DNA of 64,000 bases from Haliotis rufescens. Lineage: Eukaryota. The position numbers and the translations under genes are program-made. Shown here one piece after another: positions 2,475 through 7,852 of the stretch. Every line of letters starts with the position of its first letter. Positions within the stretch are counted from its first letter, which is position 1. The notes under the pieces were generated by a model that was given only the letters and a program-made list of their open reading frames with translations, did no database searches and was not told the DNA's origin. The stretch lies in assembly GCF_023055435.1 (NCBI RefSeq), contig NW_025964001.1, positions 30,504,001 to 30,568,000 on the forward strand. The letters run 5' to 3'.

Positions 2475-2642
2475 CACATGGCGATGATACCAGGAGTTAG
2501 CGAAAAGGTACCGAATCCGACAAGTGCTGCTTTAGTCCGAGACCGTGTTTTCAGCCACGTATGTGGTGCTATACTTCCGGAGGGCTTACTGGTCAAAGGG
2601 AGGTAATTCCACGTTAGACCGAACGGAAGATTGCCAGAGAAC
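2475..2642 (+). promoter_or_regulatory. MNAT1 proximal promoter / 5'UTR
   Basis: CpG-enriched, no obvious TATA box; YY1-like ACATGGCG (2476) and ETS-like ACTTCCGG (2573) upstream of the ATG. Confidence 0.45.
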
Positions 2643-2731
2643 ATGGACGAACAAGGTTGTCCAAGATGTAAAACAACAAAATATCGGAACCCCTCACTGA
2701 AATTACTAGTCAACGTTTGTGGACACTCATT
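2643..2731 (+). CDS. MNAT1: MNAT1 (CDK-activating kinase assembly factor MAT1) coding exon 1; full CDS join(2643..2731,6022..6174,7779..7852,9056..9159,10215..10355,10937..11053,12319..12446,15670..15826), 320 aa
   Basis: Translates [29 protein letters not shown], nearly identical to the vertebrate MAT1 RING N-terminus; donor GTGCGT at 2732, phase 2; exons total 963 nt in one frame. Confidence 0.96.
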
Positions 2732-3597
2732 GTGCGTGAATGTTTCATGTGTATCCTAATAGTCCTACTTCATTTTTTCATATAAAGAAAGGAGCATATA
2801 ACATATAGATTGTCCTATTTTCGATCAGAACAAACGTGCCCTCATCATGCTATGATTTATATTTTATCATGAAGTACTGGTAGAGAAAATAAACCTGTAC
2901 ATGGTTATTGTCAAAAAAGACATATAAGCAAAACTAGTCATATGTTACGAAGAAAGTAAAAAGTATTCCGAAGACGTTACTTTGAATTGAAGAATTTGAA
3001 CTCAAGAGAAAAAACAAACAACATTGATAAACAACACAGACTTATCAGGACAAAAAAAACATTTGGGATATCTCATTTGGGAAAAAATGCTGATGTTTTA
3101 TTGTTTAGTGCAGTTTTATTATCCCTTTACCATCATTCATAAATGTTAAATTTTTTCTCAACCAAGAATTGTTTTACAAAAACGTTTACTTCAAAATAAC
3201 ATTTCTCCTACAAGCAAATGTACAACAGAATCAAGTATGACAGTATGTGTCCTCACTCTCCGAAGGTTCACACTCCAATGAACTCACACATCCCGTTGTG
3301 GTCCATTAAAAGATATATACACATGTTCATTTGGTATGTTTAGCCTCTTGTTTCACTGATGGCTTTTCCACTTGAACATTTTGCTTTATATAAGTTACAG
3401 AACTTTAGGTATTGTGATGTGTTTAAGCTTTCCAATGGGCATTTATTGTTTTGTTTTTTCAAAAGTCAGCCTTGTCTTGCGTTCCTAGTGAAGACGACTA
3501 CATATACCCTATAATCACATGTTTATGCACAGAACCTCAAATTCCCCTATAAATCCTATGTACATCATTCTGTATGTTCTTGCCTCTTATCCTGTGT

Positions 3598-3881
3598 GGG
3601 GGCACTGGTGGCCCAGTCGTCTAAGGCGCTGCAATTCGCTGTGCAGAGTTGCGTCCCTTGGGCATGCCAGAAACCTATGATTGTGGGTTCGAATCCCGGT
3701 TTGCCCCAATTATGTTTCTAGGTTTGTCAGCACCATACCAGTGCTCGTGGGTTTCACCGAAGTGGTAAACGTCTAAGACCTGCATCACTTCGGGCTTTCC
3801 TCCCACATTAAGCTGACACGCCGCGATATATCTGGAATACTGTTAAAAGTGGCGTTAAACCCAACTCACTCACTCACTCAC
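3598..3881 (+). mobile_element. tRNA-derived SINE family A
   Basis: A box TGGCCCAGTCG, B box GGTTCGAATCC, (CACT)n tail, TSD cttatcctgtgt/cttaccctgtgt; 4 copies in window. Confidence 0.85.
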
Positions 3882-4493
3882 TTACCCTGTGTAGGGGTGG
3901 TCATAGCCTGTGTTAGGTAATCCATGCATGTTGACAGTCAAAAATAGTCAGTGTTGGAAGCATTTCGGGTTAAGGCAGTGATGGCGCTGCCTTTGTTTTG
4001 TGTGCATTTGCAAACATTCTTTCTTGTTACAGTATTCACAGGTGTCACGTCAGACTTGCTGTTGTTCTATAGTAACTACTCTAAATGTAGGCATTATGAT
4101 ATTCAGCCATACTGAATAGTCAAATGTAGGTGTTCTGTAGGGACGATACACCAACTGTGCGATCTGATACTTGCATGTGCACTTATCTGTGGTGCGTAAG
4201 CCATCTTTTTCATAGACGGGATAGCCAAATACCTGTCACACTAATGATTAACAGTTGGCAGTGTCATGAAATGGATGAAAATAATTATGTTTTCACTACT
4301 CATTTTCACTAGTAATTAGTGTTTGGTGTAACACTTATTCAAGAAAACACTTAAGGTAAGAATTGAAACTTTTTACAAAGTGTGTGACTGTGATCTATAC
4401 TTGTATCGAGAAGTTAAAAATCACGATCCACCGATGCATTGGTGTATCGTCCGACCACTAGTTTTCTGACATGTACAATGTACAATTTCTACA

Positions 4494-4722
4494 ATGTACT
4501 CTCAAATGTAGGTGTTATGGCATACAGCTACACTGTACTCTCAAATGTCGGTGTTATGGCATACAGCTACACTGTACTCTCAAATGTAGGTGTTCTGACA
4601 TACAGCTACACTGTACTCTCAAATGTAGGTGTTATGGCATACAGCTACACTGTACTCTCAAATGTAGGTGTTCTGACATGCAGCTACACTGTACTCTCAA
4701 ATGTAGGTGTTATGACATACGT
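4494..4722. repeat. 42-bp minisatellite, about 5.5 copies, abutting the 40-bp array
   Basis: Unit tgtactctcaaatgtaggtgttatggcatacagctacac and variants; an isolated related copy near 4077. Confidence 0.85.
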
Positions 4723-4726
4723 GCAG

Positions 4727-6049
4727 TTTTCACTGTTGTAGATGTGAGAGCTGTGTGGACCTGCTGTTTTCACTGTTGTAGATGTGAGAGCTGTGTGGAC
4801 CTGCAGTTTTCACTGTTGTAGATGAAAGAGCTGTGTGGACCTGCTGTTTTCACTGTTGTAGATGTGAGGGCTGTGTGGACCTCCTGTTTTCACTGTTGTA
4901 GATGAGAGAGCTGTGTGGACCTGCTGTTTTCACTGTTGTAGATGTGAGAGCTGTGTGGACCTGCTGTTTTCACTGTTGTAGATGTGAGAGCTGTGTGGAC
5001 CTGCTGTTTTCACTGTTGTAGATGTGAGAGCTGCGTGGACCTGCTGTTTTCACTGTTGTAGATGTGAGAGCTGCGTGGACCTGCTGTTTTCACTGTTGTA
5101 GATGAGAGAGCTGTGTGGACCTGCTGTTTTCACTGTTGTAGATGAGAGAGCTGTGTGGACCTTCTGTTTTCACTGTTGTAGATGAGAGAGCTGTGTGGAC
5201 CTTCTGTTTTCACTGTTGTAGATGTGAGAGCTGTGTGGACCTGCTGTTTTCACTGTTGTAGATGAGAGAGCTGTGTGGACCTGCTGTTTTCACTGTTGTA
5301 GATGAGAGAGCTGTGTGGACCTGCTGTTTTCACTGTTGTAGATGTGAGAGCTGCATGGACCTGCTGTTTTCACTGTTGTAGATGTGAGAGCTGTGTGGAC
5401 CTGCTGTTTTCACTGTTGTAGATGTGAGAGCTGTGTGGACCTGCTGTTTTCACTGTTGTAGATGAGAGAGCTGTGTGGACCTTCTGTTTTCACTGTTGTA
5501 GATGTGAGAGCTGTGTGGACCTGCTGTTTTCACTGTTGTAGATGTGAGAGCTGTGTGGACCTGCTGTTGTCATTGTTGTAGATGTGAGAGCTGTGTGGAC
5601 CTGCTGTTGTCACTGTTGTAGATGTGAGAGCTGTGTGGACCTTCTGTTTTCACTGTTGTAGATGTGAGAGCTGTGTGGACCTGCTGTTTTCACTGTTGTA
5701 GATGTGAGAGCTGTGTGGACCTGCTGTTGTCACTGTTGTAGATGTGAGAGCTGTGTGGACCTGCTGTTTTCACTGTTGTAGATGTGAGAGCTGTGTGGAC
5801 CTGCTGTTTTCACTGTTGTAGATGTGAGAGCTGCGTGGACCTGCTGTTTTCACTGTTGTAGATGTGAGAGCTGTGTGGACCTGCTGTTTTCACTGTTGTA
5901 GATGTGAGAGCTGTGTGGACCTGCTGTTGTCACTGTTGTAGATGTGAGAGCTGTGTGGACCTGCTGTTTTCACTGTTGTAGATGTGAGAGCTGTGTTAAC
6001 CTGCTATGTTCACTGTTGTAGATGTGAGAGCTGTGTGGACCTGCTGTTT
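4727..6049 (+). repeat. 40-bp tandem array (33 copies) made of the MNAT1 intron 1 / exon 2 junction
   Basis: Unit ttttcactgttgtag|atgtgagagctgtgtggacctgctg; AG ends at 4741+40n up to 6021, with no indels. Confidence 0.97.
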
Positions 6050-6174
6050 ATCAAGGGGTCGGGGACATGTCCAGAATGTGGCACAGCTCTCCGGAGAAAC
6101 AACTTCCGACTACAGATCTTCGAGGACTCCAATGTGGAGAAAGAACTTGACATTAGAAAGAGAATACTTAGAGA
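6022..6174 (+). CDS. MNAT1: MNAT1 exon 2 (C-terminal half of RING finger)
   Basis: [50 protein letters not shown]; acceptor ttgtag (6021), donor gtaagg (6175). Confidence 0.95.
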
Positions 6175-6470
6175 GTAAGGAACCTTTGATTAAATCGTAA
6201 AAGAAGCTTGTTTACACTACCGATAAGCATGTAAACTACCTGACTGTACAAAGAATAGAAGGTTAATACATCGCAAATAATGATGCATCTTGATAAATGC
6301 AGGGTTTCAAATTTCCATATAAGGTTTCCAACAGCATGCTTAAAATAATAATGGCATGGTTGACATAAGTTGTGTGTCCCTACAGGACACACTTAGTAAT
6401 CATATTCTTTTAATACCTAATCTGGTGGGAGGTTGTAAAAGACTCTCTTTATTTTTTTACCAAAAAAAAA

Positions 6471-6800
6471 GACTGCTTCCGTGGTCTAGTGGTAGAGCAT
6501 CCGCCCGGAGAGTGGATGTTCGATCCCCGGCCGCGTCATACCAAAAGACGTTTAAAGATGGTACTTATTTACACTGCTTGGCGTTCGGCATAAAGGGCTT
6601 ATTACAAGGACTGGTCAGCATGGAGTCGGTATGCTGTGCCTGAGTGGGGTATTCATGTTAAACTGCTGCATGGTATCTCAGTAGACTAGCACTATTAAAT
6701 GGGCTAGTACAAGCAGCCTCACTCACACGTGCATTCACGTCGCTTTATAAGTGCAATAGTCTTAAAAGCCACGTTAAACCCTATTTTACCTCACCTCACC
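6471..6800 (+). mobile_element. tRNA-derived SINE family B (Meta/MESC-like central domain)
   Basis: TGGTCTAGTGGTAGAG A box, GTTCGATCC B box, then GTCATACCAAAAGACG...ATGGTAC core; superfamily assignment from memory. Confidence 0.75.
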
Positions 6801-7037
6801 AAAGAAAAGGTAATGCTATCCCTCTGTAACTGGTGTGGTTTGTATAGATTTCTAGTGCCGTATACAAGGGGCAATGAAGGGGCTACTTATATTTTTGCAA
6901 ATACTAATCAACACTTTTCTAGATTTCTAATGGCTGTCAGTGGCAACTGCTACAGTGGATGGACCTGTAATGCTGTGTTATGTTGGACCAGTGAATGATA
7001 TTAATTTTAAGAAAAGAAGCTAAACATCTCAAATATC

Positions 7038-7767
7038 ACTCACCCACTCTGACCAGACATGGCATCAGACTCACCCACTCTCTGGCTATACATGACATCA
7101 GACTCACCCACTCTCTCACTATACATGGCATCAGACTCACCCACTCTCTGGCTATACATGGCATCAGACTCACCCACTCTCTGGCTATACATGGCATCAG
7201 ACTCACCCACTCTCTGACTATACATGGCATCAGACTCACCCACTCTCTGGCTATACATGGCATCAGACTCACCCACTCTCTGGCTATACATGGCATCAGA
7301 CTCACCCACTCTCTGACTATACATGACATCAGACTCACCCACTCTCTGGCTATACATGGCATCAGACTCACCTACTCTCTGGCTACACATGGCATCAGAC
7401 TCACCCACTCTCTGGCTATACGTGGCATAAGACTACCCCACTCTGGCTATACGTGGCATAAGACTACCCCACTCTGGCTATACGTGGCATCAGACTACCC
7501 AACTCTCTGACTATACATGGCATCAGACTCACCCACTCTCTGGCTACACATGGCATCAGACTACCACTCTGGCTATACATGGCATAAGACTACCCCACTC
7601 TGGCTATACATGACATCAGACTACCCAACTCTCTGACTATACATGGCATCAGACTCACCTACTCTCTGGCTATACATGGCATCAGACTCACCCACTCTCT
7701 GGCTATACATAGCATCAGACTCACCCACTCTCTGGCTATATATCACATCAGACTCACCCACTCTGAC
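7038..7767 (+). repeat. 33-bp minisatellite (about 22 copies) ending 11 nt before MNAT1 exon 3
   Basis: Unit actcacccactctctggctatacatggcatcag. Confidence 0.95.
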
Positions 7768-7778
7768 TTGTGTTCTAG

Positions 7779-7852
7779 TTTCAACAAGAAAGAAGAGGAC
7801 TTCAGTTCGTTGAGGGATTTCAATGACTATCTGGAGATGATTGAGACAATAG
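7779..7852 (+). CDS. MNAT1: MNAT1 exon 3
   Basis: FNKKEEDFSSLRDFNDYLEMIETI; ttctag / gtaaac; phases 2 and 1. Confidence 0.94.

Follow-up and report, generated by a model that had tools for sequence, protein, structure and literature searches.

A 33-copy mirage minisatellite spans the intron 1–exon 2 junction of the single-copy MAT1 gene in the red abalone, Haliotis rufescens

Tandem repeats whose unit includes an exon–intron boundary have been described in amphioxus under the name of mirages. Those located in the globin genes BflGb6 and BflGb9 do not disturb splicing (PMC3087553), and undisturbed splicing was also reported for the mirages in TnC and PGBD5 (PMC3902484). For the amphioxus Adh3 gene, the account of Cañestro et al. 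(2002) cited in PMC3087553 gives repeat units of 10–72 bp, length polymorphism, and somatic instability; splicing is reported to be undisturbed in this gene as well. A comparable arrangement on the donor side is present in the human F7 gene, in which the 37-bp VNTR of IVS7 spans the exon 7 donor: between five and nine identical donors are available, and only the exon-adjacent copy is used (PMC1557585).

An array of the same type was identified in the gene of H. rufescens encoding MAT1. This protein is an essential subunit of CAK/TFIIH. The array was analysed within a 64-kb window, i.e. the whole stretch of genomic DNA under study, to which all coordinates refer (Table 1). Tandem Repeats Finder (TRF) reported a single array at this position, with a period of 40 bp, 33.2 copies, 96% matches, no indels, and a score of 2439. 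Each unit combines the 3′-terminal 15 nt of intron 1, which end in AG, with the first 25 nt of exon 2, as read from the sequence and the unit table, and the exon part encodes the residues CESCVDLL of MAT1. A motif scan located TTGTAG/ATG (the slash marks the junction) 33 times at a spacing of exactly 40 nt, the G of each AG lying at 4741 in the first unit and at 6021 in the last. The first-pass annotation of this DNA had described both the composition of the unit and the strict 40-nt register of 33 acceptors, and both descriptions were confirmed. No further copy of the 40-bp array was detected outside the MAT1 locus in a search of the 1.33-Gb assembly. The acceptors are numbered below from AG1 to AG33 in the direction of transcription.

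Table 1. Location of the features of the MAT1 locus and of the minisatellite arrays within the window.
Feature	Position	Strand	Basis
MAT1 exon 1	2601–2731	+	ATG at 2643, ends in phase 2, MAT1 N-terminus on translation; tblastn with Haliotis MAT1 proteins; 5′ end putative
Intron 1 donor GT, phase 2	2732–2733	+	Read from sequence
Left copy of imperfect 8-nt direct repeat, TGCAGTTT	4722–4729	+	Read from sequence
Junction-spanning (mirage) minisatellite, 40 bp x 33.2	4722–6049	+	TRF, unit table, uniqueness in the genome, excess of depth in DNA runs of other samples
32 decoy acceptor AGs, one per 40 nt, all leading to a premature stop	4740–5981	+	Frame table of units
TTAAC, candidate branch-point-like motif	5996–6000	+	Motif scan
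Acceptor AG used (33rd copy)	6020–6021	+	RNA-like contigs; RefSeq XP_048258796.1
MAT1 exon 2, second half of RING finger	6022–6174	+	RNA contig; HMMER and tblastn matches to MAT1
Right copy of imperfect 8-nt direct repeat, TGCTGTTT, inside exon 2	6042–6049	+	Read from sequence
Exon 2 donor GT (AGA/GTAAGG)	6175–6176	+	Sequence; RNA contig match ends at 6174
MAT1 exon 3	7779–7852	+	Sequence, tblastn
Starts of minisatellite arrays (span 4489–45478)	4489, 4722, 7038, 16281, 23114, 27546, 30262, 32148, 34080, 37164, 39020, 39886, 42978		

The abalone repeat is a head-to-tail tandem array of a minisatellite-size unit (TRF), and this unit contains a real exon–intron boundary with the splice signal and adjoining exon sequence. 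It is, accordingly, an unusually long mirage minisatellite, a repeat type that is already known. The features shared with the amphioxus mirages are the following: the unit spans the boundary and multiplies the splice signal together with a part of the exon; normal mRNA is produced from the authentic, exon-attached copy; and the edge units are the most divergent ones. The 40-bp unit also falls within the size range quoted for Adh3 in the account cited above. The differences concern the host, which is a mollusc and not a cephalochordate; the copy number, which is 33 in the abalone compared to 3–6 in the globin mirages; and the affected gene, which in the abalone encodes the single essential CAK/TFIIH subunit MAT1. 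None of the papers accessible to the literature search describes mirages in molluscs, and the present array indicates that repeats of this kind are not limited to amphioxus.

In common with the human F7 VNTR, the abalone unit contains an exon–intron junction, and the copy adjoining the exon is the one in use; the remaining F7 donor copies are functional but silent. The geometry is, however, reversed. The F7 repeat multiplies a donor, of which the copy farthest upstream prevails, whereas the abalone repeat multiplies an acceptor, of which the copy farthest downstream prevails. In addition, a branch point and AG scanning take part in the choice of an acceptor, unlike in the choice of a donor in F7.

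Two further types of splice-site competition show a partial likeness to the abalone locus. One of them is represented by the poison sites of AS-NMD, with which the decoys share the consequence of their use: the stop codon would come to lie far upstream of later exon junctions, making a classic NMD substrate. What defines an AS-NMD switch is the proof that its poison site is used in a regulated manner, and deep conservation is usual. The abalone element, in contrast, is a young (96% identical), lineage-restricted repeat, and its contigs display no use of decoys. The other type is represented by NAGNAG sites, at which several AGs also compete for one donor. Those AGs follow one another at 3 nt, rely on a common branch point and pyrimidine tract, and keep the frame, whereas the abalone AGs are 40 nt apart, possess a tract each, and are all but one out of frame or stopped.

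The host gene was assigned to MAT1 (MNAT1) on the basis of its eight exons within the window, which match MAT1-like proteins of Haliotis and form a single locus in the genome. The exons are 96–100% identical to the H. rufescens RefSeq MAT1-like protein, and the identities to proteins of other Haliotis species are lower (tblastn). The Haliotis MAT1-like proteins were retrieved by a profile search in which the exons of the window appeared as separate rows. The comparison was made exon by exon, and the full-length comparison was made via the public RefSeq protein. A 90% cluster of MAT1-like proteins comprises sequences from H. asinina, H. cracherodii, H. rubra, and H. rufescens, and related MAT1 proteins carry the domains PF17121, PF06391, and PF25811, in agreement with the make-up of MAT1 from an N-terminal C3HC4 RING, a MAT1 core, and a C-terminal domain. 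MAT1 proteins from across the animals were matched when the exon 2 peptide was used as a query, while a query with a shark MAT1 protein returned vertebrate proteins only. When the whole assembly was searched in six frames with H. rufescens MAT1, these eight exons were the only matches and no retrocopy was found, so that MAT1 is a single-copy gene in this genome. With respect to the first-pass annotation, a small correction applies to exon 2, whose limits and donor are those given in Table 1 according to the sequence and the RNA contig.

One of the RefSeq proteins of H. rubra, the MAT1-like isoform X3, is N-terminally truncated and starts with a Met within exon 2 (CVDMLF); this position is occupied by Leu in the red abalone. 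The truncated isoform could stem from a different 5′ structure at this junction in H. rubra.

Parts of the window were found in ten sequencing studies. The comparison with read contigs covered positions 5600–7030, which include 11 units of the array, exon 2, and part of intron 2. The runs X15 and X19 are RNA-like and originate from different studies; each of them yielded one contig over exon 2. Record 18 of X15 (241 nt) matches positions 6022–6131 and has 131 unmatched letters upstream, and record 25 of X19 (544 nt) matches exactly positions 6022–6174, with 127 unmatched letters upstream and 264 downstream. Unique intron 2 sequence had no depth in either run. These contig edges at 6022, together with the empty intron 2, identify the contigs as spliced RNAs in which exon 2 begins after AG33. 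Exon 1 is located upstream of the compared stretch, and the approximately 130 unmatched letters point to it as the partner of the boundary at 6022. The same letters (131 and 127) suggest that exon 1 starts near 2601–2605 and is about 130 nt long. The sequence of RefSeq XP_048258796.1 corresponds to exon 1 joined at AG33, and the continuity of the frame between the terminal TT of exon 1 and the initial A of exon 2 agrees with this H. rufescens MAT1-like protein. Thus, the dominant mRNA uses the last AG, as evidenced by the two RNA-like contigs and the RefSeq model, and the regular mRNA originates from the authentic, exon-attached copy.

The frame table of the units revealed that AG33 is the only one of the 33 acceptors to open the MAT1 frame. 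Joining exon 1 to a decoy results in a tail of 13 residues followed by TAG, or in a one-residue variant of this tail, in 24 of the 32 cases. The remaining eight decoys (units 3, 5, 10, 11, 12, 14, 15, and 19, which carry T>A) lead to an immediate stop, TGA. The earlier claims that every upstream AG is a premature-stop decoy and that the 33rd AG is the sole productive acceptor are thereby borne out, the immediate TGA in eight units being a detail that had not been spelled out. A donor-like GTGAGA is located 2 nt past the AG in each unit (positions 4744–6029, every 40 nt), within the codons for C-E-S, and is destroyed by the T>A variant in eight of them. Its use after splicing to a decoy would add 2 nt and shift the frame, and could therefore not rescue the reading frame.

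Judged by its 3′ splice-site sequence, AG33 is not superior to the decoys (unit table), and its pyrimidine tract carries two purine changes. The discrimination must, therefore, come from the sequence context. Two elements of this context are candidates. One of them is exon definition: AG33 alone adjoins the true exon body and the strong donor AGA/GTAAGG located 153 nt downstream, and would be recognized as one end of this exon. The second candidate is a privileged branch point. The published consensus for branch points is nnyTrAy, in which T and A are the most constrained letters, at a distance of about 29 ± 12 nt from the splice site; according to the published AG scanning rule, the first AG more than about 12–15 nt downstream of the branch point is used. 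The motif TTAAC, read from the assembly at a position where the contigs have a hole, is the only perfect yTrAy between 4690 and 6021. The distance from its A5999 to G6021 is 22 nt, a stretch free of AG, and AG33 is the only acceptor preceded at this distance by such a motif, which may serve as its branch point. All other units carry TGGAC at the corresponding position and are missing the critical T. Weaker TNA motifs occur in every unit, namely TGTGAG at 34 nt and TTCAC at 9 nt before each AG.

Exon definition combined with a privileged branch point would, in our view, best account for the choice of AG33. Taken singly, neither of the two would explain the preference for AG33 over AG32: AG30 to AG32 would still give exons of less than 300 nt, which are compatible with exon definition, and AG1 keeps the whole ancestral context of the upstream intron. 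According to the proposed mechanism, exon 1 would be joined to AG33, the only copy that still sits on the real exon body, and the 32 upstream copies would behave as intronic sequence. Any transcript spliced to a decoy would acquire an early stop and be removed by NMD. The first-pass annotation had mentioned neutralisation of the array by exon definition as one of its alternatives, and this is the reading favoured by the RNA contigs and the RefSeq model. We consider it probable that the array is a mirage minisatellite of single-copy MAT1, which was born by slippage, expanded, and is spliced at its last AG, and that it is most likely neutral or slightly costly baggage and not a regulator.

The locus offers a natural system for examining acceptor choice, as an essential gene present in one copy carries a row of 33 almost identical 3′ splice sites, of which only the last is used. 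Just as the human F7 VNTR with its multiplied donors served the study of 5′ site choice, this counterpart on the acceptor side could reveal to what extent position and the order of transcription are overridden by exon definition and one branch-point motif.

The best surviving alternative is that many or even most MAT1 transcripts are spliced to decoys and destroyed by NMD, as an unregulated drain for which transcription compensates. All 32 decoys retain a pyrimidine tract and an AG that are at least as good as those of AG33, they are transcribed before it, and AG1 keeps the ancestral upstream context. No decoy boundary was present in the contigs of X15 or X19, in which rare isoforms are dropped, and the products of such splicing would be hidden both by NMD and by contig assembly. 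Words of the array do occur at low depth in X15. This run contains one 70-nt contig from the array with a depth of 2.6, compared to 6.56 for exon 2; given that the words are repeated about 15-fold, this corresponds to approximately 0.17 per copy, or about 3% of the exon depth. Such a low depth fits trace amounts of pre-mRNA, but also a small decoy-spliced fraction. The level is, however, the one expected of pre-mRNA, and X19 contains no array contig. The extra sites are reported to be unused in the amphioxus mirages and in F7. In addition, a heavy loss of transcripts from the only MAT1 gene should select against long alleles, yet the second species label among the DNA runs (see below) has a similar load. 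A drain of this kind is, therefore, unlikely. The 70-nt contig from X15 also displays T>C at position 5688, which is absent from all assembled units and represents either a variant of another individual or an error.

A more far-reaching interpretation had been offered in the first-pass annotation, in which the array figured as a copy-number-tunable AS-NMD rheostat that sets MAT1/CAK dosage. The architecture of the locus would permit it, and the depth ratios of 8–11 in other samples, compared to the 15.45 expected from the assembly, hint at differences in copy number or variants between individuals. Against this interpretation, no decoy junction was found in either RNA assembly, the boundary at AG33 being the only one in RNA from two studies as well as in the RefSeq model, and the use of decoys is not known to be regulated under any condition. 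Signs of selection on the AGs of the units are lacking: that none of about a dozen independent variants hits them is unremarkable. The same architecture is described in amphioxus as leaving splicing undisturbed. The abundance of unrelated arrays in the window points to a mutational process rather than a designed regulator. A rheostat thus appears very unlikely, and we did not retain it.

If the array were nonetheless a working dosage device, acting by decoy capture and NMD according to VNTR length, this length would tune the supply of CAK/TFIIH between individuals. In a milder version, the change of TGGAC to TTAAC would be a compensatory gain of a branch point before the last copy, which rescued the gene after the expansion. 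We give little credence to either version.

The depth of the array in DNA was evaluated in two runs. X1 bears the same species label as the window and comes from a study different from that of the probable assembly sample. It contains a 70-nt contig identical to the cycle of the consensus unit, with a depth of 127.8, and the flanking single-copy contigs have depths of 12.5–15.8. In X12, which bears a second species label and whose sequence is approximately 1–2% diverged in intron 2, the consensus unit has a depth of 358.5 compared to 31.5–37.5 for single-copy sequence. The 31-mers of the consensus have a mean multiplicity of 15.45 in the assembly, compared to 8–11 times the single-copy depth in these two samples; contig depth is not a copy count, and the exact number of 33 comes from the assembly alone. 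If the density of variants is similar, the alleles of the other samples may comprise about 17–24 units, or be more variant-rich. A single-copy contig of X1 starts exactly at 6020, i.e. at the start of the first unique 31-mer, as expected at a repeat boundary. The 8–11-fold excess in another individual and under a second species label rules out that the array is an artefact of one or two copies, a possibility that the first-pass annotation had left for raw reads to decide, and the array stands. Mis-assembly of 33 units from a true locus with one or two is, accordingly, the least credible of all readings: short-read contigs are unable to span 1.3 kb of repeat and the copy number is not directly readable from them, but the excess in depth, the contig break at 6020, and the irregular distribution of unit variants, some of them private to units at either edge, as is the case in genuine arrays, leave it hardly any room.

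The array is bracketed by two copies of an imperfect 8-nt direct repeat, TGCAGTTT and TGCTGTTT, which are identical in 7 of 8 positions and exactly 1320 nt (33 x 40) apart. This arrangement fits a slippage-type origin and agrees with the earlier suggestion that the duplication was seeded by microhomology. The first duplication of the 40-bp junction segment probably occurred by slippage or unequal exchange between the 8-nt repeats. Expansion to about 33 copies may then be attributed to the local minisatellite process that filled around a quarter of the region. The variants of the unit are clustered: the ATGAGAG units are found in the left half of the array and a G variant in units 22–31, while private changes are present in the edge units 2–4 and 32–33. 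Clustered variants and private edges are typical of arrays that grow and homogenise internally. The proposal that copy 1 represents the ancestral acceptor is not decidable, as copy 1 keeps the intron context and copy 33 the exon context.

In a survey of the window, no fewer than 13 minisatellite arrays of unrelated sequence were counted; their units measure 28–94 bp, they comprise 6–89 copies, and together they make up approximately 25% of the length of the window. Given this very high density, an array that spans a junction is unsurprising in this genome. A polymorphic 27-bp intronic minisatellite has been reported in another abalone gene. One of the neighbouring arrays (39 bp x 5.9, positions 4489–4720) directly abuts the 40-bp array, and the blocks CACTGT and ATGTrrG are common to both units. 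The similarity is weak, as 2 of 60 shuffles attained the score of the best rotation, and the 39-bp array may be either an older, decayed generation of the junction repeat or unrelated to it. A further array (33 bp x 22, positions 7038–7764) has CAG in every unit and ends 14 nt before the acceptor AG of exon 3 at 7777–7778; it is intronic and contains no exon 3 sequence.

The start of exon 2 contains GAGAGCTGTG (positions 6026–6035), which is present in 27 of the 33 units and is the perfect reverse complement of CACAGCTCTC at positions 6082–6091, inside the same exon. The two segments are paired in the predicted RNA fold of the last units and exon 2 (z = –2.6). Finally, tRNA-like, SINE-like sequence was observed at positions 6464–6850 and also at 3590–3880. 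The summed contig depth of the SINE-like region amounts to 10^5–10^6 in the DNA runs and to 10^4 in the RNA runs, which points to a very high-copy, transcribed retroposon family.
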